A stretch of DNA of 63,664 nt, the filler included, from Octopus bimaculoides (taxonomy: Eukaryota), in the NCBI RefSeq assembly GCF_001194135.2. It is 4 parts of 4 records of this genome, joined end to end, with 100 filler letters (N's around TTAATTAATTAA, not from the genome) between each part and the next. Parts side by side here need not be neighbours in the genome. Positions count along the whole stretch, not along the records: positions 18,986 to 49,850 come from NC_068999.1; 3 more parts are not named here. One strand, 5' to 3'. Both the position numbers and the translations under genes were made by a program. Positions 21,399-49,679 of this stretch are shown piece by piece (within the stretch, counting starts at the first letter, position 1; the number at the start of each line of letters is the position of its first letter). The notes beneath the pieces are model-generated. The model was not told the DNA's origin. It worked only from the letters and a program-made list of their open reading frames with translations, and did no database searches.

Positions 21399-22090
21399 TC
21401 ATCTTTTTAATTTTTTTTTCAAATTTAGGCATTCCCAACGTATGTTGAATAGTGAGCTCTTTTCACTGAATATATTAGTTAATATTCTAATTGTTTCTTC
21501 AAGACAAATTTCTGGTGGCTTTTTTGGTAGAATAAAGTTGCAGTATTTCTCATGCTCTGATGGAGCTAGTTTACGCAAAAGAAGTCTTACCTTCTTTTCG
21601 TTTGTCCAGCCTTTGTACTCTTCTTTAAATATTTTTTTATACCTTCTATAGCATGAAGGAAATATAATCCCATCTTCGGGATTACACAGGAATTCTTCAA
21701 TGGAGTTGGTTACTCCATCTGCTGAATACAACGCTACTGTGTTGGATTGTAGCAATAACCCTATCAACTGCTGGTTTAGCTGTTGTTGTTGTTGCTGTTC
21801 ACAGTATTCTTGCTGCTGCTGTAACAGCTGCTGCTGCAGCTGTTGTTGTTGTTTCACAACGGAAGCTAGTGATTCTTCCATTTTGACACTCCTACGAGCG
21901 TTCGTAGCCTTGTTACCACTATTATAATGACACCGTTATACAGTGGGAGGTATCCTCGTTGCCACTGATATGACATATGACTTCTTGTCGTCACTGTTAT
22001 AATATTAAACATTCCTGATGTTCTCTTATTACTCTCCAACTGTATATCTTCAACAAGCACTCAACAATATCTCTATTCAATAATTTCTTT
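21399..22090 (-). mobile_element. Ty3/Gypsy gag N-terminal fragment (copy A) with LTR end and PBS repeats
   Basis: ORF 21399-21881: poly-Q then NSIEEF..NPEDG..F...KVRLLLRKL..EHEKY.NFILPKKP; homologous to copy B; PBS-like TGGCAACGAGG upstream. Confidence 0.85.
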
Positions 22091-24048: not shown

Positions 24049-24480
24049 TATTGGGTTGGCAAGAAAGTAATTTCAGTTTTTTGGTGTGAAATAAAAGTCA
24101 TTTTTTTTCATACAAAGAATGAACTTTAATCAATTATATATTTTCTATTTTGTTCAATGACTTTTTGCCATCTTTCTGGCAACTTCATGATTCTGTGCTC
24201 ATAGAACTTCTGGTTCTTAGCCAAAAACTGAAGCAAGTGTGCTTTCAGGTCATCATCATTATTGAAAGCTTTACCATTCAAAGAATTCTGCAAATATCAA
24301 AATAAATGGTAATCTGATGGTGCAAGGTCAGGGCTATATGGTGAATGTAACATCACTTCCCAACCAAGCTCCAATAATTTTTCAGGAGTTAGCAAAGATA
24401 TGTGTGGTCTAGTGTTGTCATGATGGAATGCGATTCCTTTGTGATTTGCCAATTCTGGCCATTTTTCTCTGGTTGCTTCC
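24049..24480 (-). mobile_element. mariner transposon 3' half with TIR
   Basis: TIR TATTGGGTTGGCAAGAAAGTAATT; rc encodes HDNTRPH...HSPYSPDLAPSDYHLF...RWQKVIEQN. Confidence 0.9.
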
Positions 24481-24603
24481 TCCAGTTTGGAAAAATGGAG
24501 ACCACCTCCTCCTGTGGGATGAAGTTAAAATAATAGACAGAGAACACCACTGGAAAATACGAAAACTAAAAGAAGCAGCACATATGCTAGGAAATTTCCC
24601 CAA

Positions 24604-24644
24604 GACACCTGATGAAGGCTGGATATCAGCTGAAATGTTGTGTT
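24604..24644 (+). ncRNA. Minimal type I hammerhead ribozyme (pLTR copy 1)
   Basis: GACAC-CTGATGA-A-GGCTG.gatat.CAGCT-GAAA-TGTT-GTGTT; core intact, wobble pairs in stems II and III. Confidence 0.75.
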
Positions 24645-24741
24645 AACTACAAACAAGATGAGGACAAATATCCGTCAAATGTAAATAATGTACATAATTC
24701 CTCATCTCTTAAATATAGAACTGTGTTATTATTATTATTTA

Positions 24742-24811
24742 GGTCACTGCCTGGACTCGAACTCAGAATCTTGGGGTTAGTAGCCCGCACTCTTAACCAC
24801 TACGCCATATG
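24742..24811 (-). promoter_or_regulatory. tRNA-like Pol III A/B-box module in inverted pLTR
   Basis: rc catatggcgtagtggttaagagtgcgggctactaaccccaagattctgagttcgagtccaggcagtgacc. Confidence 0.8.
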
Positions 24812-25433
24812 GTCAGGGCTATATGATGGATGTGACGTCACTTCCCAACCAAGCTCCAATAATTTTTCAGGAGTTAGCAAAAATATGTGTGGGCAACTAT
24901 GGAGTGAATTTTAGGGCTTATAAATCTAATATTCTCCTATCTTTTCTTAATACTGGTTCCCATATGCTGTTCGTATCTGCACTTGGTCTGCTTAGGAGGT
25001 TGTTGTATCCTAGCCTATGTGCTGCTTCTTTTAGCTTTCTTATTTTCCGGTGGTGTTCTCTGTCTATTATTTTAACTTCATTCCACAGGGGGAGGTGGTC
25101 TCCATTTTTCCATTCATGATCAGCTATACCTGATTTATCAATATCTCCTCATGTCACAGCTTTGTGATGTTCATCTACCCTTATCTTGAGAGGGCGGCAT
25201 GTTTCACCTTTGTATAACCTACTACCTCCCCCTGTGGGATGAAGTTAAAATAATAGACAGAGAACACCACTGGAAAATACGGAAACTAAAAGAAGCAGCA
25301 CATATGCTAGGACACAACAACCTCCTAAGCAGACCAAGTGCAGATATGAGTAGCATATGGGAACCGGTATTAAGGAAGAATAAGAAAATATTAGATTAAT
25401 AAGCCCTAAAATTCACTCCATAATTGCCCACGG

Positions 25434-25505
25434 GGCATATGGTGTAGTGGCTAAGAGCATGGGCTACTAACCCCAAGATTCCGAGTTTGATTCCAGGCAG
25501 TGACC
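25434..25505 (+). promoter_or_regulatory. tRNA-like Pol III A/B-box module in 5' pLTR
   Basis: TGGTGTAGTGG ... GTTTGATTCC (CpG-decayed boxes). Confidence 0.75.
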
Positions 25506-25570
25506 TGAATAATAATAATAACATCGAAAAATACCTTAGGAATGAGAACCCGGGTTCGAAATTTCCTCAA

Positions 25571-25616
25571 GATACCTGATGAAGGCTGGAGGGTATATCA
25601 GCTGAAACATTGTGCT
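25571..25616 (+). ncRNA. Minimal hammerhead ribozyme (5' pLTR, copy 2)
   Basis: CTGATGA 25576-25582, stem II GGCTG/CAGCT, GAAA 25604-25607; stem III damaged (CG>CA). Confidence 0.7.
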
Positions 25617-26653
25617 AACAACAAACAAGATGAGGACAAATATCTGTCAAATGTAAATAATGTACATAATTCCTCATCTCTTAAATATAGAACTGTATTA
25701 TCTAATCAGTACAGAGCTAACTTTACACTTCAATAGAGACATATAGAAAAACTCCATCAAAAACTAGCTTGTCTTTCAAACCATCTAACTTTCCTGTGTA
25801 GATGTAGAGACTCAAAGCTTATACCACCTGGCTTAAATATAATGACACCAGTAGATTCACATAAAGCTAGAAGAGTAGCGGAAAGGGCAGGGCATGCCCT
25901 CATCCATGAGAGGATCCATTACAACCACTGGAAAAAACATCAACTAAATAACAAAATCAAAAAGAGGTTATATTCATTACTTAGGAAAATAACCAGAGAT
26001 GATGACAGAAAGAGAATCCAACAAGATCTAGAAAAGTCGTACATAAAAGAATTTGAAATGGTGAAAACACACCAGATTAAGAAGTTTATGTAACCCAAAG
26101 GTCAGAGAATGAAGACTGAAGTCCGTCACCCACCTGTGAAAGCAGTAATTAATGTAAGTCTAGAAAAGTTTGCTTTCAAAAGACTAGTGACAATTCCATC
26201 ATAATAGTTCCAGAGGACAAGGGAAATGCTACCGTGGTGATGAACAAGTCTGACTACTTGGAAAAATTGACAACTCTTATAAGTGATGGTAGCTATAACA
26301 AAGAAAAGAAAGACTCAACTCTGAAAACAGAGAGGAAGTTGTCACAGATCTTGATCAAGAACAAGGATCACTTTACACCAATGAAGTACAGACAACTGAC
26401 TCAACACCACAATAAACTACTACACATATATGGTAGGATGGTATTCCACTAAGACCTAGTTGAGGTTCAGCATGTCAATATTGTACGTGAAGAATTCCAC
26501 CTACTTCACAGAATTGATCAAGGATACCCCCACTGAATCCAACCAGATGGTGAGTATAGATGTGATAAGTCTGTTCACCAAAGTCCCAACTGGCGAAGTA
26601 CTTACTATTTTTTAAATCTCACAATGAGAGATATTCAGCAACAGTACTTTGTA

Positions 26654-26825
26654 GTAAAGATTGTTTGCCAACATAGCATGGCAATCCTGGTTTAGGACGA
26701 ATATTGCTGTAATTTAGCCCCAGGAGACATTGTCTTCAGCTGGCTATAAGGACACAGATCATGTCATATAAGGACACAGATCATATTATGTTGACTGCCA
26801 TATTATGCTGACAAACAATCTTTAC
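26654..26825. mobile_element. MITE with ~33-bp imperfect inverted repeats inserted in the PLE RT
   Basis: gtaaagattgtttgccaacatagcatggcaatc / gactgccatattatgctgacaaacaatctttac. Confidence 0.75.
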
Positions 26826-28069
26826 TGGTGAAGCACTATCAGTGATTGATTCGAGAAAAACTAGTAACAGACACCCATCTAAAAGAACACACTAGTATAC
26901 CAATAAGAAACCTGATGGAAATGTTGATCTTCTGTGTAGAAACTACCTACTTCAGTTTGGACACTGATATATATCAACAAGAAGAGGGTTTAGCTATGGG
27001 TTCACCATTATCACCAATAATAGCCAATATGTACATGGAATNNNNNNNNNNACCATTATCACCAATAATAGCCAATATGTACATGGAATACTTTGAGAAT
27101 TTGGCTTTAGGATCAACACCACTAAAACCAACCCTATGGCTGTGATATGTAGATGATACCTTTATACTCTGGCCCCACCAGGAAGATGTCCAAGTGCTGT
27201 TAGATCATGTGAACACAAAAAAGCCATCCACACAGTTGACAATGGAAAAAGACAAAGACAACCAGCTAGCATTCCGGGATGTATTAATAACATGCACCAA
27301 GCATGAATTCAGGACATCTGTATACCGCAAGCCAACCTTCACTGGATGATACCTCAACTTCATTTCCCACTATCCATACAATGTAAAGAAAGGGATTGCT
27401 CAGTGCCTGAAACATCGAGCAAAGAATATAAGTATACACACTACAAAGAAATGATCAAGCTCAATAACAATCTATTAAGCAACATACTATCCCAAAAACA
27501 TACTATCCACTCCAATTATGAAGAAAAGAGGGGATGAAACCAATAAACTGTCCACAGTCTGTCTACCCTATGTGAAAGGCGTCTCTGAAAAGATACAAAA
27601 GATATGCGGCCCATATGACATTAGGACAGTATTCAAGAGTAATACAACACTTCGCAAATATCTCCTTCGAGTAAAACCACCAACAGAAGAGAATATGACC
27701 AAAAACTGCGTATACTCCATCCCATGCAGCTGTGGTAGGTCATACAAAGGCGAAACATGTCGCCCCCTCAAAATAAGGGTAGAGGAATATCACAAAGCTG
27801 TGACACGAGGAGATATTGATAAATTGGGTATAGCTGATCATATATGGAAAAATGGAGACCACCTCCTGCTGTAGGATGAAGTTAAAATAATAGACAGAGA
27901 ACACCACTGGAAAATAAGAAAACTAAAAGAAGCAGCACATAGGCTAAGACACAACAACCTCCTAAGCAGACCGAGTGCAGATATGAGTAGCATATGGGAA
28001 GTGGTATTAAGGAAGGATAGAAATATGTTAGATTTATAAGCCCTAAAATTCACTCCATAGTTGCCCACT

Positions 28070-28140
28070 GGCATATGGCGTAGTGGTTAAGAGCGCAAGC
28101 TACTAACCCTAAGATTCCGAGTTCGATTCCAGGCAGTGGC
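28070..28140 (+). promoter_or_regulatory. tRNA-Arg-like Pol III A/B-box module in 3' pLTR
   Basis: A box TGGCGTAGTGG (28076-28086), B box GTTCGATTCC (28121-28130); CT-ACT-AA loop; AAGATTCCGAGTTCGATTCCAGGC resembles tRNA-Arg(ACG) AAGATTCCAGGTTCGACTCCTGGC. Confidence 0.8.
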
Positions 28141-28302
28141 TATAATAATAATGATGATGATGATGATGATGATAACATTGAAAAATACCTTAAGAATGAG
28201 AACCTCGGTTCGAAATTTCCAAGCAGTGACCTGAACAATAACAATAATAATAACATCAAAAAATACCTATGGAATGAGAACCCAGGTTCGAAATTTCCCC
28301 AA

Positions 28303-28348
28303 GACACCTGATGAAGGCTGGAGAGTATATCAGCCAAAACGTTGTGTT
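28303..28348 (+). ncRNA. Minimal hammerhead ribozyme (3' pLTR, copy 3)
   Basis: GACAC-CTGATGA-A-GGCTG..CAGCC-AAAA-CGTT-GTGTT; G12>A consistent with CpG decay. Confidence 0.7.
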
Positions 28349-28479
28349 AACAACAAACAAGATGAGGACAAATATCCGTCAAATGTAAATAATGTTAAAT
28401 TCCTTTGTTATTGACTATGATGTACAAGAGGGGGTTGAGACCCTGAAGTCAATGCTATACTCATTGCTAACCTTCACCT

Positions 28480-28655
28480 TACTGACAGCATTCCTATACA
28501 TGACTGTATAGCTCTCACCAACCACTCATCCCAACTTCCGCACTGACCACCAGATAAGGGAGTGGGGTCTCTGTCAAAGGCTTCTCCATGTCAACAAAAG
28601 CCAGGTACAGGGGTTTATTCTTGGCTAGATTTTTCTCCTGCAGTTTGCCTAACCA
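28480..28655 (-). mobile_element. RTE LINE RT fragment
   Basis: LQEKNLAKNKPLYLAFVDMEK, matching the RTE at 34260-34330. Confidence 0.85.
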
Positions 28656-28664
28656 GGAATATAT

Positions 28665-29912
28665 ATGTTCATTAAAGATTTCCCCTGAACCACTTCCAGT
28701 TATTGCAGGAAATGGAACTTGTACAGGTATAATCATATATGCCTCTACATGTCACAGTGTAAATTGCAGCTTTGTACTAGTATTCATTTGTCTTTTACGG
28801 TTGCTGAAGTGGACTAAGGTGTTATAATGGAGGCAGCTGAATGCAGATCAGTGACCAGGTTCTTATACTTGAAAGGTTGTACACCAAAAGGACTTTCAAT
28901 GAGATGAAAGAAATTTATGGTGACGATGCATCATCATACAACGTAGTCATGCACTGGCATTATCAGTTCAAATGTGGTTGGATATTGGTGGAAACTGCTC
29001 GTACCACATTTTGCCATTAATGATGACACCATCCATAAAGTGGAAGCCACCATTTTGGAGGATCATGGCATAACTATTCAGCAACTAGCCCAAGAAGTAA
29101 AGATAAGTGTAGGGTCTGTGGAAAAAAATTAATGACGACCATTTGCACATGCAGAAGTTGTCTGCATGATGGATTCCCTGGATGCTCACACCTTTTCTGA
29201 AGCAGGAATAAGTTAATTGCTCCCAGGCTCTTTGGCAATATGCCAAGAAAATATGCCAAGAGGAGGACTTACCACACAGGATGAAACATGGGTCCATCAC
29301 TATGATCCTGAGACTAAAGTCCAGTTGAAGCAATGGAAGCATGATAACTCATCACCTCCAAAGAAGGCTTGTGTCCAACCCTTACTAGGCAAGGTGATGC
29401 TCACAGTCTTTTTGGACCAGCACAGAGTAGTGATGATGGATTTTCTGGCAAAGGGCACCACAATTAACAGGGCATATTATGCTTCCCTGCTGTAGAAATT
29501 GCAGGACGCCATCAAAGCAGAGAGGCATGGCATGCTGATCAAAGGAGTCCACCTCTTCTAAGACAATGCCACAGTTCACAATGCACATGTTGCCCAGATG
29601 AAAGTACACTCCTGTGGCTATGAAATCCTTCCTCACCCACCTTACTCTCCTGACCTCACACCATCTGATTTCCACCTCTTTCCAACCATGAAGTCTTTTT
29701 TGAAGAGGAAGCACTTTTCGGATGATGATGAACTTATTTCCAAGGTAAAGTCTTGGCTCCAGACGAGGTCTCCACAGCTGCATAAAGTGATGGGAGAAGT
29801 GTGTCACTATTCATGGTAGCTTGTAGAGAAGGACTAATAATTATGCCAAGTTTCGTTTATCTCAGTCCTTGGGAAGTGGATCAGGGGAAATCTTTAATGA
29901 ACATCCCTTGTA
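28665..29912 (+). mobile_element. mariner transposon (irritans-like, DD34D), pseudogenised, both TIRs
   Basis: TIRs 28665-28697 / 29872-29912 (ATGTTCATTAAAGATTTCCCCTGA.CCACTTCC); DETWVHHYDPE, DNATVH, HPPYSPDLTPSDFHLF. Confidence 0.9.
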
Positions 29913-32479: not shown

Positions 32480-34435
32480 GTGTATGCAGGTTGAATTGAA
32501 GGCTATTGTTTGTTTATGAATTCTGCCAAATGCAAGCTTTCTTTTCAGGTACATGACAATGCTGTCCCCCGTCCCAGGGTCTCACAGGCGCACACCTCCC
32601 ACACCCTCAGGGTTGGCACTCTCAATGTCGGCACACTGAAAGGTAGGTCTGGTGAGATTGTTGAGATGCTTGGACGGAGACGTGTCATATGTGCTGCCTC
32701 CAAGAAGTAAGGTGGAGAGGAGGTTCCGCTAGGTTCCTCACAAGCAAAGAACACAGGTACAGGATTTTCTGGACACTGACGAGGTCGGGGGCATGGGTAT
32801 ACTTCTTGTGGGAATACTTAAGATTAGATTAGTGCTTCATCATGGGTTAGCAACCATTATCTCGGCCTATGACACCCGCTTGCAGACTACCTCGTTGACA
32901 AATGACAGGAACCTTCCATTTGTGACTGGTGACTTCAATGGACATGTTGGACAACATGCAGGGGCTTCCATGGCGTACATGGAGGTTGTGGTTTTGGTTC
33001 CCGCAATGAAGAGGGAACCAGGCTGCTAGAGTTCTGTGATGCAAATGATCTTATGGTTTGCAATACAAACTTCAGGAAACCTGCCAGTCACCTAGTCACC
33101 TACCATTCTGGCAGACACACTAGCCAAATTGACTACATCCTCACCAGAAAAAGGGAAAGATGGCTGCTTATAAATGCCAAAACCTTCCCAGGCAAAGAAT
33201 GTACCCCACAACATAGACTGGTAGTTAACGACTTCAGGATCAGGGCTAAATGGATGCCCACAAGATGACCAGCATGGAGGAGAAGGGTTTGGAAGTTTAA
33301 AGATCCTGCAAACGGACAGAGATTTAGAGACATATTACTCGAAGCCTTTGACGAAATAGAGGGGGATATAGCTTCAAACGATGTAGAAGACAACTGGAGG
33401 TTTCTATGGGACAACCTGCTGAGGGCCACTGACCAGATCTGTGGATGGTGCAAAGTCCCCTCTCGACCCAAAATAATGTGGTGGTGGAACAATGTTGTTG
33501 ACAGGGCTATTAGACAAAAGAAACAGGCTTGGAAGGACTGGAAGAACAGTGGTAGCAGAGAATTGTATCAGACTGCCAGAAGGGAAGCTAGGAGACAGGT
33601 TTATTTAGCCAGAGCGGAAGCAGATAAGAAAAAATTTGCCAATGTTCTGCGCCATGAGGACCAAAGACTTGACACTGCTGTCCCCCGTTGCAAGACAGTG
33701 TGTGAGAGAGAATCGTGATGTCATAGGAGAGAAATGTGTCCGCATGAATGATGGTTCACTTGCACTAAACAAGGCTGCAAAGAGAGAGGTTTGAAGACGC
33801 CACTATGAAAAGTTGCTCAATAATGGGAGAAAGAGAGTCTGCCGAATGTCGACCCAACAGAGGGACCAGCTATCTGAATTGACAGTACCTCATTGATAAA
33901 GCAATTAAGAGTATGAAAACAGGGAAAGCTCCCGACCCATCAGGAATCACTGCAGAGATGCTCAAAATATCTGGCAGTGTTGGCTATAACCTAGTCACTC
34001 GTATAGTTAACCAGGTGATACATGAAGGAGTCATACCCAATGACTGGTGTAGTAGCACCATAGTCAACTGCTACAAAGGTAAAGGTGACGCTTTAGATAC
34101 AAATAATTACAGAGGTATCAAGTTGTTGGATCAGGTAATGAAGGTCACGGAGAGGGTCATAGCCCAACTATTTAGGGAGAGAGTCAGTTTAGATGAGATG
34201 CAGTTTGGGTTTGTGCCAGGGAAAAGCACCACTGATGCTATATTTCTGGTAAGACAGTTGCAGGAGAAATACCTAGCCAAAGATAAACCTCTGTAACTGG
34301 CTTTTGTTGACATGGAGAAAGCCTTTGACAGGGTTCCCTGTTCCCTTATCTGGTGGTCAATGAGGAAACTTGGGATAGATGAGTGGTTAGTGAGAGCTGT
34401 GCAAGCCATGTACAGGGACGCTGTCAGTAAGGTTA
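32480..34435 (+). mobile_element. RTE LINE 5' half (APE endonuclease + RT N-part), pseudogenised
   Basis: LRVGTLNVGTLKGRSGEI; GDFNGHVG; SQIDYIL; QHRLVV; KAPDPSGI; NNYRGIKLL; LAFVDMEKAFDRV. Confidence 0.95.
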
Positions 34436-35879: not shown

Positions 35880-36060
35880 CACCACCACCACCACTATCAT
35901 CATCATCATCATCATCGAAAAATACCTTAGGAATGAGAAATCAGGTTCGAAATTTCCCCAAGACACCTGATGAAGGCTGGAGGGTATATCAGTCAAAACG
36001 TGTTAACAACAAACAAGATGAGGACAAATATCCGTCAAAAGTAAATAATGTAAATAATTT
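35880..36060 (+). mobile_element. Solo pLTR fragment of the Penelope family with decayed hammerhead (35962-36004)
   Basis: catcgaaaaataccttaggaatgaga...gacacctgatgaaggctggagggtatatcagtcaaaacgtgtt...gtaaataatgt. Confidence 0.9.
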
Positions 36061-38097: not shown

Positions 38098-41000
38098 TCT
38101 GTATATATAAAAAGCAGGATGTGTGTGTATGTGTGTACGTGAATGTAATTTATGCACATCCACAAATTAGCACACGTCGCTCCAATTTTAGGACATTCGT
38201 CATGACCCTATCTGCATTTTCGTCAACTTTTTCTCTCAGAGGCACCCGCGTATAGCTGTAAAAATCAATTTTCAACCATAACTTTTACTAATTTTGAAGT
38301 TTGCTAACATGGCGAAGTCAAAGTGTGCATATGCGTGTGAGGGAGAGAGAGTAATTGTGTGTTGATGTATGTGTGTGTGTGTGTGTGAGAGGGGGAGTGA
38401 TGGAGAGATAGAGATTGTTTGCCAGCGTCTAACAAAAAAAGTAAAGAAAAAGTGGGAGAGGGAGACAGAAAGCGTCTAACGAAAGAAAAGGTAGGTAAGG
38501 AAGACAGAGTAGGTGTAAAATGTAAAATGCTTTTTTTTTCTTAAACATGAGATATAGTTTCAAATATAAGATGTTTTTGAGATTATATATACTTTCTCAC
38601 ACAACAATTAAAATATATTTATTTTAAATCATTCATCTTTCTCCCCCTCTCACTCTCACACACACACACACACACATACATACTACTTTGGGAGCGAAAG
38701 AGTTTTGTTTATATTTCACGCCGAAGAAAAAAGTTTATTGTCAATCCATTTATTTAACAACAATGAAACAAAGAGGTATGTAACAATTTGTCAGTGAATT
38801 ACACAATATAAATGGGTAAAATTTCCAAGGCTTCCACCACACCCTAACCTGTTTTTCAGACCACAAAAAGGGTTTTGTAGCATATTAGCAGGCCAGGATA
38901 GTTGATTCCATGCAAAAAATCCCATTTATTTTTTTCTTAGTGAAAATCGTACGAGTGTTATCTAAAAATTTAGCTGTAGCTTTTCATGGTAAATTCGAGA
39001 TTTAAAAATATGTTTTCCACATTCTTCATCTCCGTATGTTGGTTAATTCAATTAGAAAATAAAACCTAATGAACGATGTAATTAGCAACTAGCACATTTT
39101 GTTTCTTAGTTTTTGTTTACTTCTCTGTTTAAATTCTTTACTTGACTGTTATATTTCTTACGAAGAGTGGAAAAATGTTTTCCATATTCTTAATCTCCGT
39201 ATTTTTCCCATACATTGAAAAATAGATGGTGAAAAGATTAATGGGTGTGGGGGGTGAAATTTCCAAGGCTTCCACCACACCCCAACCCGTTTTTCAGACC
39301 ACAAAAAGGGTTTTGTAGCATATTTCTTACGTAGAGAATCTGCATCCTTAATTTTTAAAATTTTATTATATATTTTAATTTTATTCTATTCNNNNNNNNN
39401 NNNNNNNNNNNNNNNNNNNNNNNNNNNNNNNNNNNNNNNNNNNNNNNNNNNNNNNNNNNNNNNNNNNNNNNNNNNNNNNNNNNNNNNNNNNNNNNNNNNN
39501 NNNNNNNNNNNNNNNNNNNNNNNNNNNNNNNNNNNNNNNNNNNNNNNNNNNNNNNNNNNNNNNNNNNNNNNNNNNNNNNNNNNNNNNNNNNNNNNNNNNN
39601 NNNNNNNNNNNNNNNNNNNNNNNNNNNNNNNNNNNNNNNNNNNNNNNNNNNNNNNNNNNNNNNNNNNNNNNNNNNNNNNNNNNNNNNNNNNNNNNNNNNN
39701 NNNNNNNNNNNNNNNNNNNNNNNNNNNNNNNNNNNNNNNNNNNNNNNNNNNNNNNNNNNNNNNNNNNNNNNNNNNNNNNNNNNNNNNNNNNNNNNNNNNN
39801 NNNNNNNNNNNNNNNNNNNNNNNNNNNNNNNNNNNNNNNNNNNNNNNNNNNNNNNNNNNNNNNNNNNNNNNNNNNNNNNNNNNNNNNNNNNNNNNNNNNN
39901 NNNNNNNNNNNNNNNNNNNNNNNNNNNNNNNNNNNNNNNNNNNNNNNNNNNNNNNNNNNNNNNNNNNNNNNNNNNNNNNNNNNNNNNNNNNNNNNNNNNN
40001 NNNNNNNNNNNNNNNNNNNNNNNNNNNNNNNNNNNNNNNNNNNNNNNNNNNNNNNNNNNNNNNNNNNNNNNNNNNNNNNNNNNNNNNNNNNNNNNNNNNN
40101 NNNNNNNNNNNNAATGATAAGGGCGACATATCCATCTCTGAACTGTACAACACAGTGGACAACCCTTCTGATCTTTTGGAAACAGTGTTCCCCAATCTGG
40201 AAAGTAACTATGCAAACATCAGTTGGCTCAGTGAAAGAACCATCCTGGCCCCCAAAAATGTAGCTATCAGTGCTATCAATGACCAGCTCATAAGCCGAAT
40301 TCCGGGTGAGGAGCGCATCTACAAATTGATCGACCGGACCTGTGACCCCCAAGACATTGTCAATTACCCTATCGAGTTTCTCAACTCATTGGAGCCAGCA
40401 GGGCTTCCACCTCACATTCTTAGGCAAAGGGTTGGATGCCCAATTATGCTAATCAGAAACTTGCTTCCGCCTAAATAGTGCAATGGGACCCGCTTAGTAG
40501 TTAAGTCCCTGATGCCCCACTTGATTGAGGCCACCATTGTTACAGAATGCGGGAGGGGTGAAAATGTTTTCATTTCAAGGATGCATCTTTATCCCTCAGG
40601 GTCAGACATGCCATTTCACTTCTGCAGATCGCAGTTCCCGGTGAGACCATGCTTTGCCATGTCCATCAACAAATCCCAAGACCAAACACTATCGGTGGCA
40701 GGCATCTATTTGAGGGAGCTATGCTTTTCACATGGGCAACTTTATGTGGCCTGCTCCCGTGTGGGTAGTAGAAACGCTCTTTTTGTGTATGCTCTTCAGG
40801 GCAGAACATGCAATGTTGTCTATAGCGAAGTTTTATAGACAAGTTGTCATTGCAGCTGATGTGGTTATAAACAGTGATCTGGAAGCATTGGCCAGACATA
40901 TTCTCAAACCATGGCAATATGACTTATGGACTCTTCCTCTTTTTTATTGGACAATGCTGACTTCTCCAACAACAATGCTCACTCAGCTGATATCAGTGAT

Positions 41001-43884: not shown

Positions 43885-45284
43885 GTGGGTATGGGAGTAT
43901 GCAGTGGGGGAAGGTGCGCTGAAAGTGTAGCTGCTAGAATAAGAATAGCCTGGGCAAAGTTCAGAGAGCTCTTACCCCTGCTGGTGACAAAGGGTCTCTC
44001 TCTCAGAGTAAAAGGCAGACTGTANNNNNNNNNNNNNNNNNNNNNNNNNNNNNNNNNNNNNNNNNNNNNNNNNNNNNNNNNNNNNNNNNNNNNNNNNNNN
44101 NNNNNNNNNNNNNNNNNNNNNNNNNNNNNNNNNNNNNNNNNNNNNNNNNNNNNNNNNNNNNNNNNNNNNNNNNNNNNNNNNNNNNNNNNNNNNNNNNNNN
44201 NNNNNNNNNNNNNNNNNNNNNNNNNNNNNNNNNNNNNNNNNNNNNNNNNNNNNNNNNNNNNNNNNNNNNNNNNNNNNNNNNNNNNNNNNNNNNNNNNNNN
44301 NNNNNNNNNNNNNNNNNNNNNNNNNNNNNNNNNNNNNNNNNNNNNNNNNNNNNNNNNNNNNNNNNNNNNNNNNNNNNNNNNNNNNNNNNNNNNNNNNNNN
44401 NNNNNNNNNNNNNNNNNNNNNNNNNNNNNNNNNNNNNNNNNNNNNNNNNNNNNNNNNNNNNNNNNNNNNNNNNNNNNNNNNNNNNNNNNNNNNNNNNNNN
44501 NNNNNNNNNNNNNNNNNNNNNNNNNNNNNNNNNNNNNNNNNNNNNNNNNNNNNNNNNNNNNNNNNNNNNNNNNNNNNNNNNNNNNNNNNNNNNNNNNNNN
44601 NNNNNNNNNNNNNNNNNNNNNNNNNNNNNNNNNNNNNNNNNNNNNNNNNNCTTTGGAAATATGCTATGCATGAGAGGACCCGGCAAGCCACGTGAGACCA
44701 AAATCCAAGGCCTCTGCCAGGGATGTAGTCAGCCCACTTATGTGTACCTTTCCTTCATTGTGAAGACCTGTTGAGGCAAATGAAATCAAAATCGAAATCG
44801 AACTAAATTCGACGACTGGCCCCCATGCCAATGTCTCCTTCATTGGACACTAAACTCAGCTTGCGAAGACCTGTTGGGGCAAGTGAAAGCGAAGTCGTGA
44901 TGGCACCTGTACCAGTGGAGCGCTAACAGCACCATTCGAGTGTCATCGTTACCAGCGTTGCCTTCCTGGCACTTGTGGTATGTAAAAAGTCGTTCGAGCG
45001 AGATTGTTGCCAGTGCCACTGGACTGTGCAGATGGCATGTAAAATACACCATTTTGAGCGTGGCCGTTGCCAGTACCGCCTGACTGGCCTTCGTGCTGGT
45101 GGCACATAAAAGCACCCACTACACTCTCAGAGTGGTTGGCGTTAGGAAGGGCATCCATTTGTAGAAATTCTGCCAAATCAGATTGGAGCCTGGTGTAGCC
45201 ATCTGGTTCACCAGTCTTCAGTCAAATCGTCCAACCCATGCTAGCATGGAAAGTGGACGTTAAACGATGATGATGATGATGATG
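43885..45284 (+). mobile_element. RTE LINE 3' part (gap 44025-44650) with (GAT)n tail
   Basis: ARIRIAWAKFRELLPLL; family 3' UTR and tail catggaaagtggacgttaaacgatgat. Confidence 0.9.
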
Positions 45285-47058: not shown

Positions 47059-49263
47059 GTGTGCATGTGTTTAGATGGCTTCTTGCAAAAGACCAGGAGA
47101 GACGTGAGTCTGTGGGCTCTGTCTTTTGAAGGAAAGAAGAAAACTGTTGAGGTAGGTGACTTTGTTCGTTTGAGCTGGGCATAATATATTGTTTGTCTAT
47201 TTTTTCAGTAAATTCTGCCCAGCTCTGGAGCAATTTCGCCTACTCTTGGCATTTTTTTATTGCTTGTGTTCGCAAGCAAAAGTTGATTTTTTGGGGGCGT
47301 ATCCCTGCCCGAAAAAAAGAGAAAGTTGAACTTTATTTTTGTGCTTGTTCTGGTCGCAGTGTTCCAGCTGAATTTTTGCTACCAAAAAGGCCAAAAAGTT
47401 TTTTCACTCTAAGTGAATAATTGTGGAAGTTCCTGTGTGTTCCAGTCGTGTGGTTCCAGGTTCGAACAGTAGGTCCAGATTACCTAGTGGCTGAAGGAAT
47501 TGTTTGCTGTGCTTTTTGAACTGTTTTCTTTTTCTTGAACTGTTTTTTTCCTTTTTTGTTGTGACTTCTTTCTTTGAATTTTTTGAACTGTTTTCTGTTT
47601 ATTTGTGTTTTTCTTTTTTGAACTTTAAAAAAAAAAAACATGGTGAAGAAGCAGAGCGCTGCCTTGGAGTGTGAGGTTATCCCACCCAAGGAGTGGTTGA
47701 AAGATATGAACAATAGAACGGTGGTGCTAAGGACCTATTCTAGGTCTCTTGGCACCATTGTTCAATACAATAAAGATTGCATTGAGAAAGAGTTGGCAGA
47801 ATACCTGCCAACTCTAAAATTTATTTCCTGGGGGTACAAATTTGCAACAGTATGGTTGCTATTTGGTACCCCCGAGGAAGCCTGTACCTTCGCGGGGAAA
47901 CCCCTGGAAGGAAAGGAAATTGTGTTCTTCCCCACTTATTGTGGGAGAAAAATAATAAGAGCCTCGATGTGCAGGCTACCCCACCGGGCATGGAGGCCGG
48001 ATGGATTGAAGATACCATCCAGCGAGGCCTGGGGGATAGCGGCCTCAAGTTGCTCAATGTAACTATGGCTCCCACGGTCAACTGGGAAGGGTCAAAGGTA
48101 ACTTTGACCCAGTGGACCTCACCGGCCACGGGGAAAATGACTTTCCTGGACTTTTTGACAATGGCAGGTTCGAGGTATCCAGTGATACTGGAGGGTCGCC
48201 CCCCACCCCAGTGTCACTCGTACCTGGAGTCGGTCCATGTCAAAAAGGATTGTCCAAGAGACCGTGGCAAGGCCCCGGAGCAGGGAAAGATAAAAAAGCA
48301 CTCCGCCCTCTCATTGCAGAGAGAGGCTGAGGAGGTTGTTGAGGAATCAAATTCAATAAATAGAAAAAGAAAGGTGAGCAACGATAGTTGCTCACCAGAA
48401 GATGATGTGCAGGATGTGGGAGAGGAGATAGATCCCCCGGGTGTGCCGGTGGAGGCCTCGACTCACGCAACCGGGAAAAGAAAAAAGAAAAAGAGAAATC
48501 GAAGACGGTCAGTGGGTGTTGATGTGCCGTTGATTGANNNNNNNNNNNNNNNNNNNNNNNNNNNNNNNNNNNNNNNNNNNNNNNNNNNNNNNNNNNNNNN
48601 NNNNNNNNNNNNNNNNNNNNNNNNNNNNNNNNNNNNNNNNNNNNNNNNNNNNNNNNNNNNNNNNNNNNNNNNNNNNNNNNNNNNNNNNNNNNNNNNNNNN
48701 NNNNNNNNNNNNNNNNNNNNNNNNNNNNNNNNNNNNNNNNNNNNNNNNNNNNNNNNNNNNNNNNNNNNNNNNNNNNNNNNNNNNNNNNNNNNNNNNNNNN
48801 NNNNNNNNNNNNNNNNNNNNNNNNNNNNNNNNNNNNNNNNNNNNNNNNNNNNNNNNNNNNNNNNNNNNNNNNNNNNNNNNNNNNNNNNNNNNNNNNNNNN
48901 NNNNNNNNNNNNNNNNNNNNNNNNNNNNNNNNNNNNNNNNNNNNNNNNNNNNNNNNNNNNNNNNNNNNNNNNNNNNNNNNNNNNNNNNNNNNNNNNNNNN
49001 NTCCAGGCCTTTCGGCAAGCAGCAGGAATCTTGCTTGAGGGCCCGGATAAGGAAGATTGAACTGTTGAATTTTGTAAAACTTAATTTTGTGAAATTTTAA
49101 TTGTAAAATTGAACTATGTTTTCGAGGGATTATCGGTCGGGGGGCGCCGGTGCCACTCTCATCTGTATTGATTTCATTATCATTTCATCTCATTAATGTA
49201 TTTGTCTAGACTGCAGCTTCTTCCTTATCTATGTACAGCCTTTATGGCTAATATAATGAAATA
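47059..49263 (+). mobile_element. L1/Tx1-like non-LTR element (ORF1-like; gap 48538-49001) with 16-bp TSD
   Basis: TSD aagaagcttgcttc(c/t)c at 47043-47058 and 49264-49279; ORFs 47640-48062 and 47852-: RRM-like LLFGTPEEA and degenerate knuckle CHSYLESVHVKKDC; AATAAA-like 3' end. Confidence 0.7.
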
Positions 49264-49430: not shown

Positions 49431-49679
49431 NNNNNNNNNNNNNNNNNNNNNNNNNNNNNNNNNNNNNNNNNNNNNNNNNNNNNNNNNNNNNNNNNNNNNN
49501 NNNNNNNNNNNNATTTAATAAAAGCATCTAAATATGAAACATGAAAATTGTTCAAACTGAAGACCTTCTTGAGCGACACTATTTTTCGAGATGAATAAAT
49601 AAAATTGACTACTAAGTATTTATGGAATTCTGATTTACTGTTGGGTGACTTTTGGCCAAACCCTATATATATATATATA

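Follow-up and report, generated by a model that had tools for sequence, protein, structure and literature searches.

A tRNA-derived module and loss of T-runs in a Penelope-like element of Octopus bimaculoides and its relatives: possible transcription by RNA polymerase III

Introduction

How does a Penelope-like element (PLE) carry its own promoter from one insertion to the next, and could that promoter belong to RNA polymerase III (Pol III)? This question is raised by a stretch of Octopus bimaculoides DNA of 63,664 nucleotides (assembly GCF_001194135.2), called the window below, where a nest of fragments from one PLE family lies at 24488-28397, inside a mariner-like transposon, in the piece taken from NC_068999.1. 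Autonomous retrotransposons are taken as units of RNA polymerase II (Pol II). Pol III is, to our knowledge, regarded as the enzyme of short non-coding passengers alone, among them short interspersed nuclear elements (SINEs), Cassandra and Helenus, and their small size is put down to Pol III. According to our analysis, the window PLE appears to belong to a previously undescribed group, in which a tRNA-derived module stands just upstream of the gene and T-runs are nearly completely lost from the coding strand. We consider an internal Pol III promoter with read-through of the whole unit, accompanied by selection against T-runs, to be the probable best explanation of these features, and would give it a rough probability of 0.55.

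Results

The tRNA-derived module

The initial annotation of this locus had placed a module with an A box and a B box in both pseudo-LTRs (long terminal repeats) and in an inverted copy, upstream of a hammerhead and of an open reading frame (ORF) for reverse transcriptase (RT). All of these parts were found:

25434-25505, + strand: module of the upstream pseudo-LTR, 72 nt, followed by an (AAT)n run; A box 25440-25450 TGGTGTAGTGG, B box 25484-25494 AGTTTGATTCC; repeat family D7
28070-28141, + strand: module of the downstream pseudo-LTR, 72 nt; A box 28076-28086 TGGCGTAGTGG, B box 28120-28130 AGTTCGATTCC
24742-24811, - strand: inverted copy of the module; A box 24797-24807 TGGCGTAGTGG, B box 24753-24763 AGTTCGAGTCC; inverted repeats I3 and I5; 64.7 bits with the module-based model R1
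25570-25622, + strand: minimal type-I hammerhead motif inside the N-terminal coding region (CUGAUGA, helix II of ~5-6 bp, GAAAC)
25542-28039, + strand: decayed PLE ORF, from the N-terminal region through RT to a GIY-YIG-like C-terminus; ATG at 25542, stop codon at 28037-28039

The A boxes of the window modules fit TRGCNNAGTGG and the B boxes fit GGTTCGANNCC with one mismatch, the upstream B box having an additional C-to-T change; the distance from A to B is 33 nt. Both direct modules sit upstream of a hammerhead core (CCTGATGAAGGCTGGA, at 25575 and 28307, with cores also at 24608 and 35966) and of the RT ORF. The ATG comes 37 nt past the upstream module, its frame continues through the hammerhead, and the downstream module begins ~30-37 nt past the stop codon.

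The identity of tRNA-Arg(ACG), which had been given to this module, found no support, as neither ARAGORN at default settings nor Rfam (gathering thresholds, E <= 1-10) calls a tRNA in the window or in its relatives, and a relaxed ARAGORN threshold brought only noise (27, then 945 scattered calls). Single modules fold into no cloverleaf and with a stability no better than that of shuffled sequences (z-scores -1.8 to +1.2), and the acceptor stem lacks complementarity on its 3' strand. The RNAalifold consensus of the module has zero predicted pairs and no covariation. In module alignments of nine and then eight copies the invariant columns are T.G...AGTGG.TA of the A box and GTT..A..C of the B box, and the rest varies. 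tRNA-derived SINEs are similar, with a degenerate head whose A and B boxes lie ~33 nt apart, a lost cloverleaf and no internal T-runs; their transcription ends in the flanks, as would that of the present elements. Because only the two boxes are conserved and the fold is absent, the module can be read as a SINE-head-like DNA promoter; its pattern is that of a SINE head seemingly kept as promoter DNA and not of a structured tRNA mimic.

Relatives with and without the module

DNA of relatives was fetched via the conceptual protein of the window element, and 80 diverse PLE loci from metagenomes were added; these loci are cited by L numbers. A chance SINE insertion in one copy, one of the possibilities that would have undone the initial annotation, does not account for the module, since a homologous one is found at the same position, between stop codon and ATG/hammerhead, in eight relatives (L001, L003, L086, L002, L084, L085, L087 and L096) that are 46-74% identical to the window copy. 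L001 and L003 share ~72-74% nucleotide identity with it in the RT region, and L002, L084 and L085 ~52-53% amino-acid identity with its protein; L087 is a Tara Oceans contig and L096 comes from Harmonia axyridis (OU611932.1); near-intact units from marine metagenomes are among the eight. All nine module-bearing elements have at most one mismatch per box, on the sense strand. Their boxes are 32-33 nt apart, one sublineage having 49-51 nt instead, and both distances are inside the 30-60 nt range of a type-2 promoter. In its 5' half, the module of L085 seems to resemble tRNA-Glu.

The relatives also bear on the proposed autonomy of the element. An intact ORF of 847 aa is present in L002, in keeping with an autonomous, protein-coding PLE family; the window copy itself is dead, having stops in frame, frameshifts, an insertion of ~240 nt, a mutation in its upstream B box and hammerhead cores decayed at CpG. 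The ORF of L084 contains one stop in frame, and L085, truncated at its 5' end, retains an ORF of 545 aa. L084 is a circularly permuted unit of 2685 bp whose ends (1-43 and 2686-2728) overlap by 43 nt, and it therefore represents tandem DNA or a circular molecule. Its order is stop codon, ~15 nt, module, ~25 nt and ATG, so that the module is nearly its sole non-coding DNA. The inverted arms of the Harmonia copy are 99-100% identical, which makes this copy young, and the Harmonia axyridis family is probably active.

Four near relatives lack the module: L088, L089, L097 (Diabrotica) and L098. Model R1, built on module sequence alone, has no comparable match in them or in the 80 other PLE loci. 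In the neighbour-joining tree L088 and L089 nest within the module-bearing group beside L096, and their T-run counts are normal, which suggests, as the simplest reading, one loss of the module followed by relaxed T-run avoidance; because the tree is without support values, this reading is only suggestive. Taken together, the module looks to be an integral and old part of the PLE lineage.

There are also several weaker signals. The only further hits of R1, three in number and on the minus strand, score a weak 16-23 bits and lie in DNA flanking L086 (6719-6780), L097 (14413-14477) and L096 (5620-5684); they could be tRNA genes or SINEs. Matches of the A/B-box regular expression in L010, L071 and L067 are unrelated tRNA- or SINE-like flanking sequence outside those PLEs. 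The motif GGTTCGAAATTTCC, found at 25553, 28207, 28285 and 35944, ~20 nt before each hammerhead, was considered as an extra TFIIIC site or second B box and set aside as probably coding: it lies within the N-terminal frame (R-V-R-N-F), L001 has in-frame repeats of a related unit of 21 nt (VRKVSSQ), and the compact sublineage is without the motif.

Loss of T-runs

T-runs are the terminators of Pol III. The + strand of 25434-28400 contains 25 exact TTT, more than the twenty or so counted initially, and, as had been noted, a single run of four or more T, the T6 at 26608-26613. This run is tied to a secondary insertion at 26600-26846, where it sits on the left edge and not in the interior, as first described. 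The T6 aside, the T4-free stretch reaches from 25110 to 28629 (~3.5 kb), although the same piece has on average 9.0 T4+ runs per kb, and the RTE region at 32500-34400 has, as claimed, several such runs on its + (sense) strand, namely four T4. For this pattern, whose chance had been estimated at ~0.003, a binomial using the T fraction of the element gives P = 0.0011 (0 of 25 TTT extending) or P = 0.0077 (at most 1 of 26), and a first-order Markov null for the window ORF gives only P ~0.12. The window copy alone is thus suggestive and not decisive.

The family gives a clearer answer, and the prediction that T4 runs would fall below expectation across it was borne out. Nine module-bearing copies have 10 T4+ runs in 25.0 kb (0.40 per kb) where 38.7 are expected for independent, identically distributed bases (Poisson P = 4e-8), whereas the four closest module-less relatives have 90 in 12.0 kb (7.5 per kb; 52.0 expected under the same model). 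When RT-coding regions of 84 PLE loci are ranked by observed over expected T4+ runs, the four members of the window clade are 2nd, 3rd, 4th and 6th lowest, and most PLEs are at or above expectation. L022 and L007 also rank low, though module-less; we took this for sampling noise of short ORFs, and the 3' region of L007 is T-run-rich.

From synonymous-codon shuffles, which keep both the protein sequence and the codon usage, one would expect 63.5 T3+ runs in the clade ORFs, where 26 are seen (P < 0.0005), and 8.9 T4+ runs, where 4 are seen (P = 0.03). When 44 PLE ORFs with a length of 1200 nt or more are compared, those of the clade, five in number, take the bottom five places (ratio 0-0.49, compared with 0.67-1.43 for the other 39). 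The pooled run ratio in the clade is 0.30 for T and 0.89, 0.93 and 0.92 for A, C and G, with 1.03 for T in other PLEs. Phenylalanine codons are nearly all TTC in the clade and balanced or TTT-rich elsewhere. Amid T-run-rich flanks the T4-free zones coincide with the elements (L085 2309-5164, L086 2646-5731, L096 1996-4970). As far as such counts can tell, the depletion is particular to this clade and to T, and goes beyond codon usage.

The runs remaining in two of the elements have particular settings. The T4 runs of L087, at 658 and 694, stand ~55-95 nt past the hammerhead in its direct and inverted copies alike; T4 may terminate only weakly in that host, or else this family is an exception. 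The sole run of four or more T in L084 (T5, 356-362) overlaps its sole internal in-frame stop (AAT TTT TAG), and one local mutation or assembly error may have created both.

Copy ends at the module

Three copies have their start or a breakpoint no more than ~4 nt from the tRNA-like +1 of the module, an observation that was made post hoc. The L002 contig opens (1-94) with a 46-nt perfect palindrome at the module 5' edge, having its axis at position 49 and +1 at 50; the inverted short copy of L087 begins 2 nt before +1; and in the window the homology of the inverted module to the direct copies ends at ~+4, where an 82-nt duplicated mariner fragment starts. An RNA 5' end at the module would produce copy ends of this kind, which are an indirect hint of the start ~10-20 nt upstream of the A box that a type-2 promoter would have. 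Short copies that start at the module hint at SINE- or retrozyme-like partners.

Hammerhead motifs

The hammerhead of the window is homologous to the motifs of L001, L002, L084 and L085 (CCTGAYGA-GGCCGG...GGCCGAAACGTT). Rfam hammerhead models give no score for it in the window or in the relatives, and the call rests on motif and homology, including the palindromic AACGUU of the PLE hammerhead motif. Decay of CpG type relative to the relatives (CCGG to CTGG, CGAAAC to CAAAAC or TGAAAC) is seen at 25575-25622, 28307-28354, 24608-24652 and 35966-36010, and the copies at 28307 and 35966 have lost the core G of GAAA. CpG methylation in the host genome is probable.

Layout of the window copy

The main copy is a partial tandem: the final 0.5 kb of the unit (27845-28397) recurs as the upstream pseudo-LTR (25208-25701), with 85-95% identity. 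Around the modules, the hammerhead and the ORF given above, the following parts can be distinguished:

24488-24729, + strand: partial PLE fragment without the tRNA-like module, an ORF-end piece (matching 27845-27949) joined directly to hammerhead and tail (matching 25558-25701); repeat families D2, D3, D8
24811-24892, no strand given: 82-nt mariner fragment between the inverted module and the inverted PLE ORF end, a duplicate of 24326-24407; repeat family D6
24889-25225, - strand: inverted, 5'-truncated copy of the 3' end of the PLE ORF; inverted repeat I1, 337 nt, 90% complementary to 27732-28068
25208-25433, + strand: start of the upstream pseudo-LTR, with a remnant of both the ORF C-terminus and the 3' untranslated region of a truncated upstream unit; repeat families D1 and D2, 86-91% identical to 27845-28071
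26600-26846, no strand given: secondary insertion in the RT region, with 34-nt inverted repeats at 26653-26686 and 26793-26826 (I7); ~240-290 nt have no counterpart in L001
27042-27089, no strand given: assembly artefact, 10 N (27042-27051) and a second exact copy of the preceding 38 nt; repeat family D10
28142-28301, + strand: microsatellite (ATA/ATG)n and a 78-nt tandem duplication of the start-codon region (28163-28220, 28241-28298); repeat families D5 and D9
28302-28397, + strand: the downstream pseudo-LTR's hammerhead motif, where decay has turned the core GAAAC into AAAAC, and the 3' tail after it; repeat families D3 and D4
35900-36059, + strand: solo 5'-truncated copy of the same PLE family with start-codon region, hammerhead and tail; it starts in a microsatellite, lacks the module and has the same 3' end point

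Similarity among the element copies stops at ~28397. Relatives have the same arrangement of pseudo-LTRs (here the direct repeats 25208-25701 and 27845-28397) with an inverted copy (24889-25225), and such a head-to-head arrangement is typical of PLE insertions. The breakpoint of the 82-nt mariner fragment is the 5' edge of the inverted module, and this duplication could be a long target duplication or a template switch. The insertion at 26600-26846 breaks the RT frame, and its inverted repeats are of a kind with miniature inverted-repeat transposable elements or hairpin-forming sequence. The N-gap at 27042-27051 is an uncollapsed assembly overlap: 27004-27041 is identical to 27052-27089 across it, and deletion of the Ns with one 38-nt copy (48 nt, a multiple of 3) restores GLAMGSPLSPIIANMYMEYFENLALG...YVDD in frame, so the flanks of the gap are continuous.

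The RT is recognised by Pfam RVT_1 (E = 2.8e-10) and has the motifs YVDD and GLAMGSPLSP. The protein has 1097 homologues with an architecture of RVT_1, DUF8422 and HTH_animal (best E = 1e-220), and it groups with PLE ORFs in the neighbour-joining tree. The putative GIY-YIG domain is recognisable by motif only, as VYSIPCSCGRSYKGET..R..EH aligns with the family consensus; Pfam GIY-YIG gives a weak E = 0.23 in the intact protein P0002 and no match in the window C-terminus, and some homologues have a precomputed PF01541 match. The window element is a canonical endonuclease-bearing (EN+) PLE by each tested feature, the Pfam score of GIY-YIG excepted.

Surroundings of the element

Transposable elements crowd the piece throughout, and its ORFs include no host gene. 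The mariner-like transposon on the reverse strand (24054-24487) has an end like an inverted terminal repeat, TTGGGTTGGCAAGAAAGTAATTTCAG, and the C-terminus of its transposase is on the reverse strand of 24060-24490 (HHDNTRPH...YSPDLAPSDYHLF). A second mariner-like N-terminus, with stops, lies on the + strand at 28800-29420 (RFLYLKGCTPK…EMKEIYGDDASSYNVVMHWHYQFKCG), and 33-nt inverted repeats are found at 28665-28697 and 29872-29904. Farther along the + strand there is an RTE-type RT fragment of 127 aa (33913-34296), and on the - strand, at 21399-21881, an ORF of 160 aa with a polyglutamine-rich N-terminus, which may be a gag-like remnant of a retroelement. Further gaps in the same piece are at 39392-40112, 44025-44650, 48538-49001 and 49431-49512.

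Discussion

The repeat unit reads, in order, as A/B-box module, short spacer, ATG, N-terminal region with the minimal hammerhead, RT, GIY-YIG-like domain, stop codon and the next module. We propose that the module would be an internal promoter of Pol III (type 2), comparable to a tRNA-derived SINE head, and that Pol III would start at its 5' edge and read through the whole ~2.7-kb unit, or through more than one unit in tandem and pseudo-LTR arrangements. Selection would strip T-runs from the sense strand, which would make this read-through possible, and transcription would stop at the first T-run of the flanking DNA. As transcription would start upstream of the promoter, each full-length insertion would receive a copy of it. 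Such transcription would explain why only the boxes are conserved, why the depletion is limited to T, to the sense strand and to this lineage, why compact units need no room for another promoter and why full-length copies inherit this one. The more ambitious suggestion, that this is an autonomous protein-coding lineage of insects and marine animals in which Pol III makes an RNA of at least 2.7 kb serving both as RT template and as messenger, we put forward tentatively, at slightly less than even odds. The interpretation offered by the initial annotation is in this way supported at the level of sequence evolution, while it overstated the Arg(ACG) label and a window copy that is dead.

Several points speak against this reading. 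The Pol III model leaves unaccounted for both the translation of an uncapped RNA and the role of the hammerhead, and a cleaved RNA would lose its start codon, because the ATG is upstream of the hammerhead cleavage site. No precedent for a protein-encoding Pol III transcript of ~2.7 kb was found in the literature, and retroelements known to be driven by Pol III do not exceed ~1.3 kb and lack autonomy (PMC10886601). Some T4 runs remain in module-bearing copies (four in L003, two in L087 and one each in L001, L086 and L084), and the window copy alone is not significant under the first-order Markov null. Several module-bearing loci are metagenome contigs, and the correlation of module and T-runs rests on essentially one gain and perhaps one loss. 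As for the copy ends at +1, other inverted copies have their truncation points elsewhere, and an assembly artefact may have produced the L002 palindrome.

The sole serious alternative among the three that we considered is a division of labour, which we regard as possible but clearly less probable than Pol III read-through. The module would then be a working Pol III/TFIIIC element for a short SINE-like RNA (module, hammerhead and tail), or a TFIIIC boundary that keeps the pseudo-LTR open, Pol II would make the messenger and the template, and the T-run loss would come from codon preference or from avoidance of U-rich splice or decay signals. It would be in keeping with solitary copies such as L096, which has the module only at the 3' end and would transcribe only hammerhead and tail before a flanking T7, with the inverted copy of L087, a short unit beginning at the module, with the T4 runs still present in some module-bearing copies, and with the Pol II-type promoters used by the pseudo-LTRs of D. 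virilis Penelope and Chlamys (PMC8557442). It leaves unexplained, however, a T-specific, ORF-wide loss that goes beyond codon usage and is gone in the module-less sisters. A terminator right after the tail would be harmless or useful for a short RNA, yet none evolved within the unit, and the compact units have no obvious non-coding room for a Pol II promoter.

It is improbable that the module acts as RNA, either as a tRNA mimic cut by RNase P and RNase Z between units or as a tRNA-like aid to translation or RT recognition. It derives from a tRNA, and its place, 15-40 nt past the stop codon and 25-40 nt ahead of the ATG, would make it an ideal punctuation point, but the lack of any ARAGORN or Rfam tRNA in any copy, of consensus structure and covariation and of a complementary acceptor 3' strand speaks against a folded molecule, and we rejected the RNase P/Z idea on this basis; conservation limited to the two boxes and the T-run loss are not explained either. 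Hardly credible is a coincidence, in which a tRNA-derived SINE landed by chance in an ancestral copy and the T4-free strand follows from A-rich, T-poor coding sequence. PLE sense strands are indeed A-rich, P for the window copy by itself is only ~0.001-0.1, according to the null model chosen, and the flanks of L010, L071 and L067 have unrelated tRNA-like matches. The position and the boxes of the module are nevertheless kept across elements down to 46% amino-acid identity, from insect and marine samples, and 43 module-less PLE ORFs of similar T content have no depletion.

In their partial-tandem pseudo-LTRs and inverted 5'-truncated copies the present elements are like the canonical EN+ PLEs (Penelope, Poseidon and Neptune, including D. 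virilis Penelope and Anolis PAc). PAc has a minimal hammerhead in which a palindromic AACGTT replaces helix III and which overlaps the ORF start, and the same is true of the present elements (PMC11167929, PMC4209133). Described PLE pseudo-LTRs contain Pol II-type promoters or introns (PMC8557442), whereas here the non-coding part of the pseudo-LTR is essentially the tRNA-derived A/B-box module and the sense strand has lost nearly all of its T-runs. In the open literature searched, with Repbase and closed-access papers outside its scope, neither a tRNA-like module nor Pol III is described for PLEs (PMC4209133, PMC8557442, PMC11167929, bioRxiv 10.64898/2026.07.22.740005).

The SINE-like elements Sm-alpha and Sj-alpha of Schistosoma already combine a hammerhead with a Pol III promoter related to tRNA; their multimeric Pol III transcripts are thought to be cut to units, and retention of the promoter requires tandem copies (PMC6765202). 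They measure a few hundred nt, encode no protein and are non-autonomous, and the present elements have the same pairing on a 2.7-kb RT-encoding unit. TRIMp3 elements, with 5S rRNA in the LTRs of Cassandra, a tRNA-like sequence in Helenus, and Ajax, carry a small-RNA-gene promoter in terminal repeats that is regenerated on copying, with only the promoter boxes conserved; they are non-autonomous LTR elements of 311-1263 bp with a primer-binding site and a polypurine tract, and their shortness is ascribed by the author to Pol III processivity (PMC10886601). The present elements differ from them in being autonomous PLEs, ~two to nine times longer. They differ likewise from SINEs, which are short, non-coding, non-autonomous and dependent on long interspersed nuclear elements (LINEs): the head is fused here to the autonomous element itself, within a 2.7-kb RT-encoding unit with the 847-aa ORF of L002. 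Metazoan non-LTR retrozymes are tandem hammerhead repeats that were proposed to be non-autonomous derivatives of PLE pseudo-LTRs, in a preprint that makes no mention of tRNA, Pol III or a promoter (bioRxiv 10.64898/2026.07.22.740005). The short copies of module, hammerhead and tail could be retrozyme-like.

A conserved tRNA-type promoter on a 2.7-kb RT element, together with lineage-specific removal of terminators, challenges the division of retroelements between Pol II and Pol III. It offers a simple answer to how a PLE carries its own promoter, and raises the question of how an uncapped Pol III transcript is translated. The Pol III idea is directly testable, because the Harmonia axyridis family is named and probably active, and its host can be reared in the laboratory. 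If true, this would be the first autonomous retroelement assigned to Pol III, and its transcript among the longest natural ones so assigned. A possible origin is thereby suggested for tRNA-hammerhead SINEs and for animal retrozymes, as such a PLE lineage would be a natural source of tRNA-hammerhead SINE- or retrozyme-like offspring.

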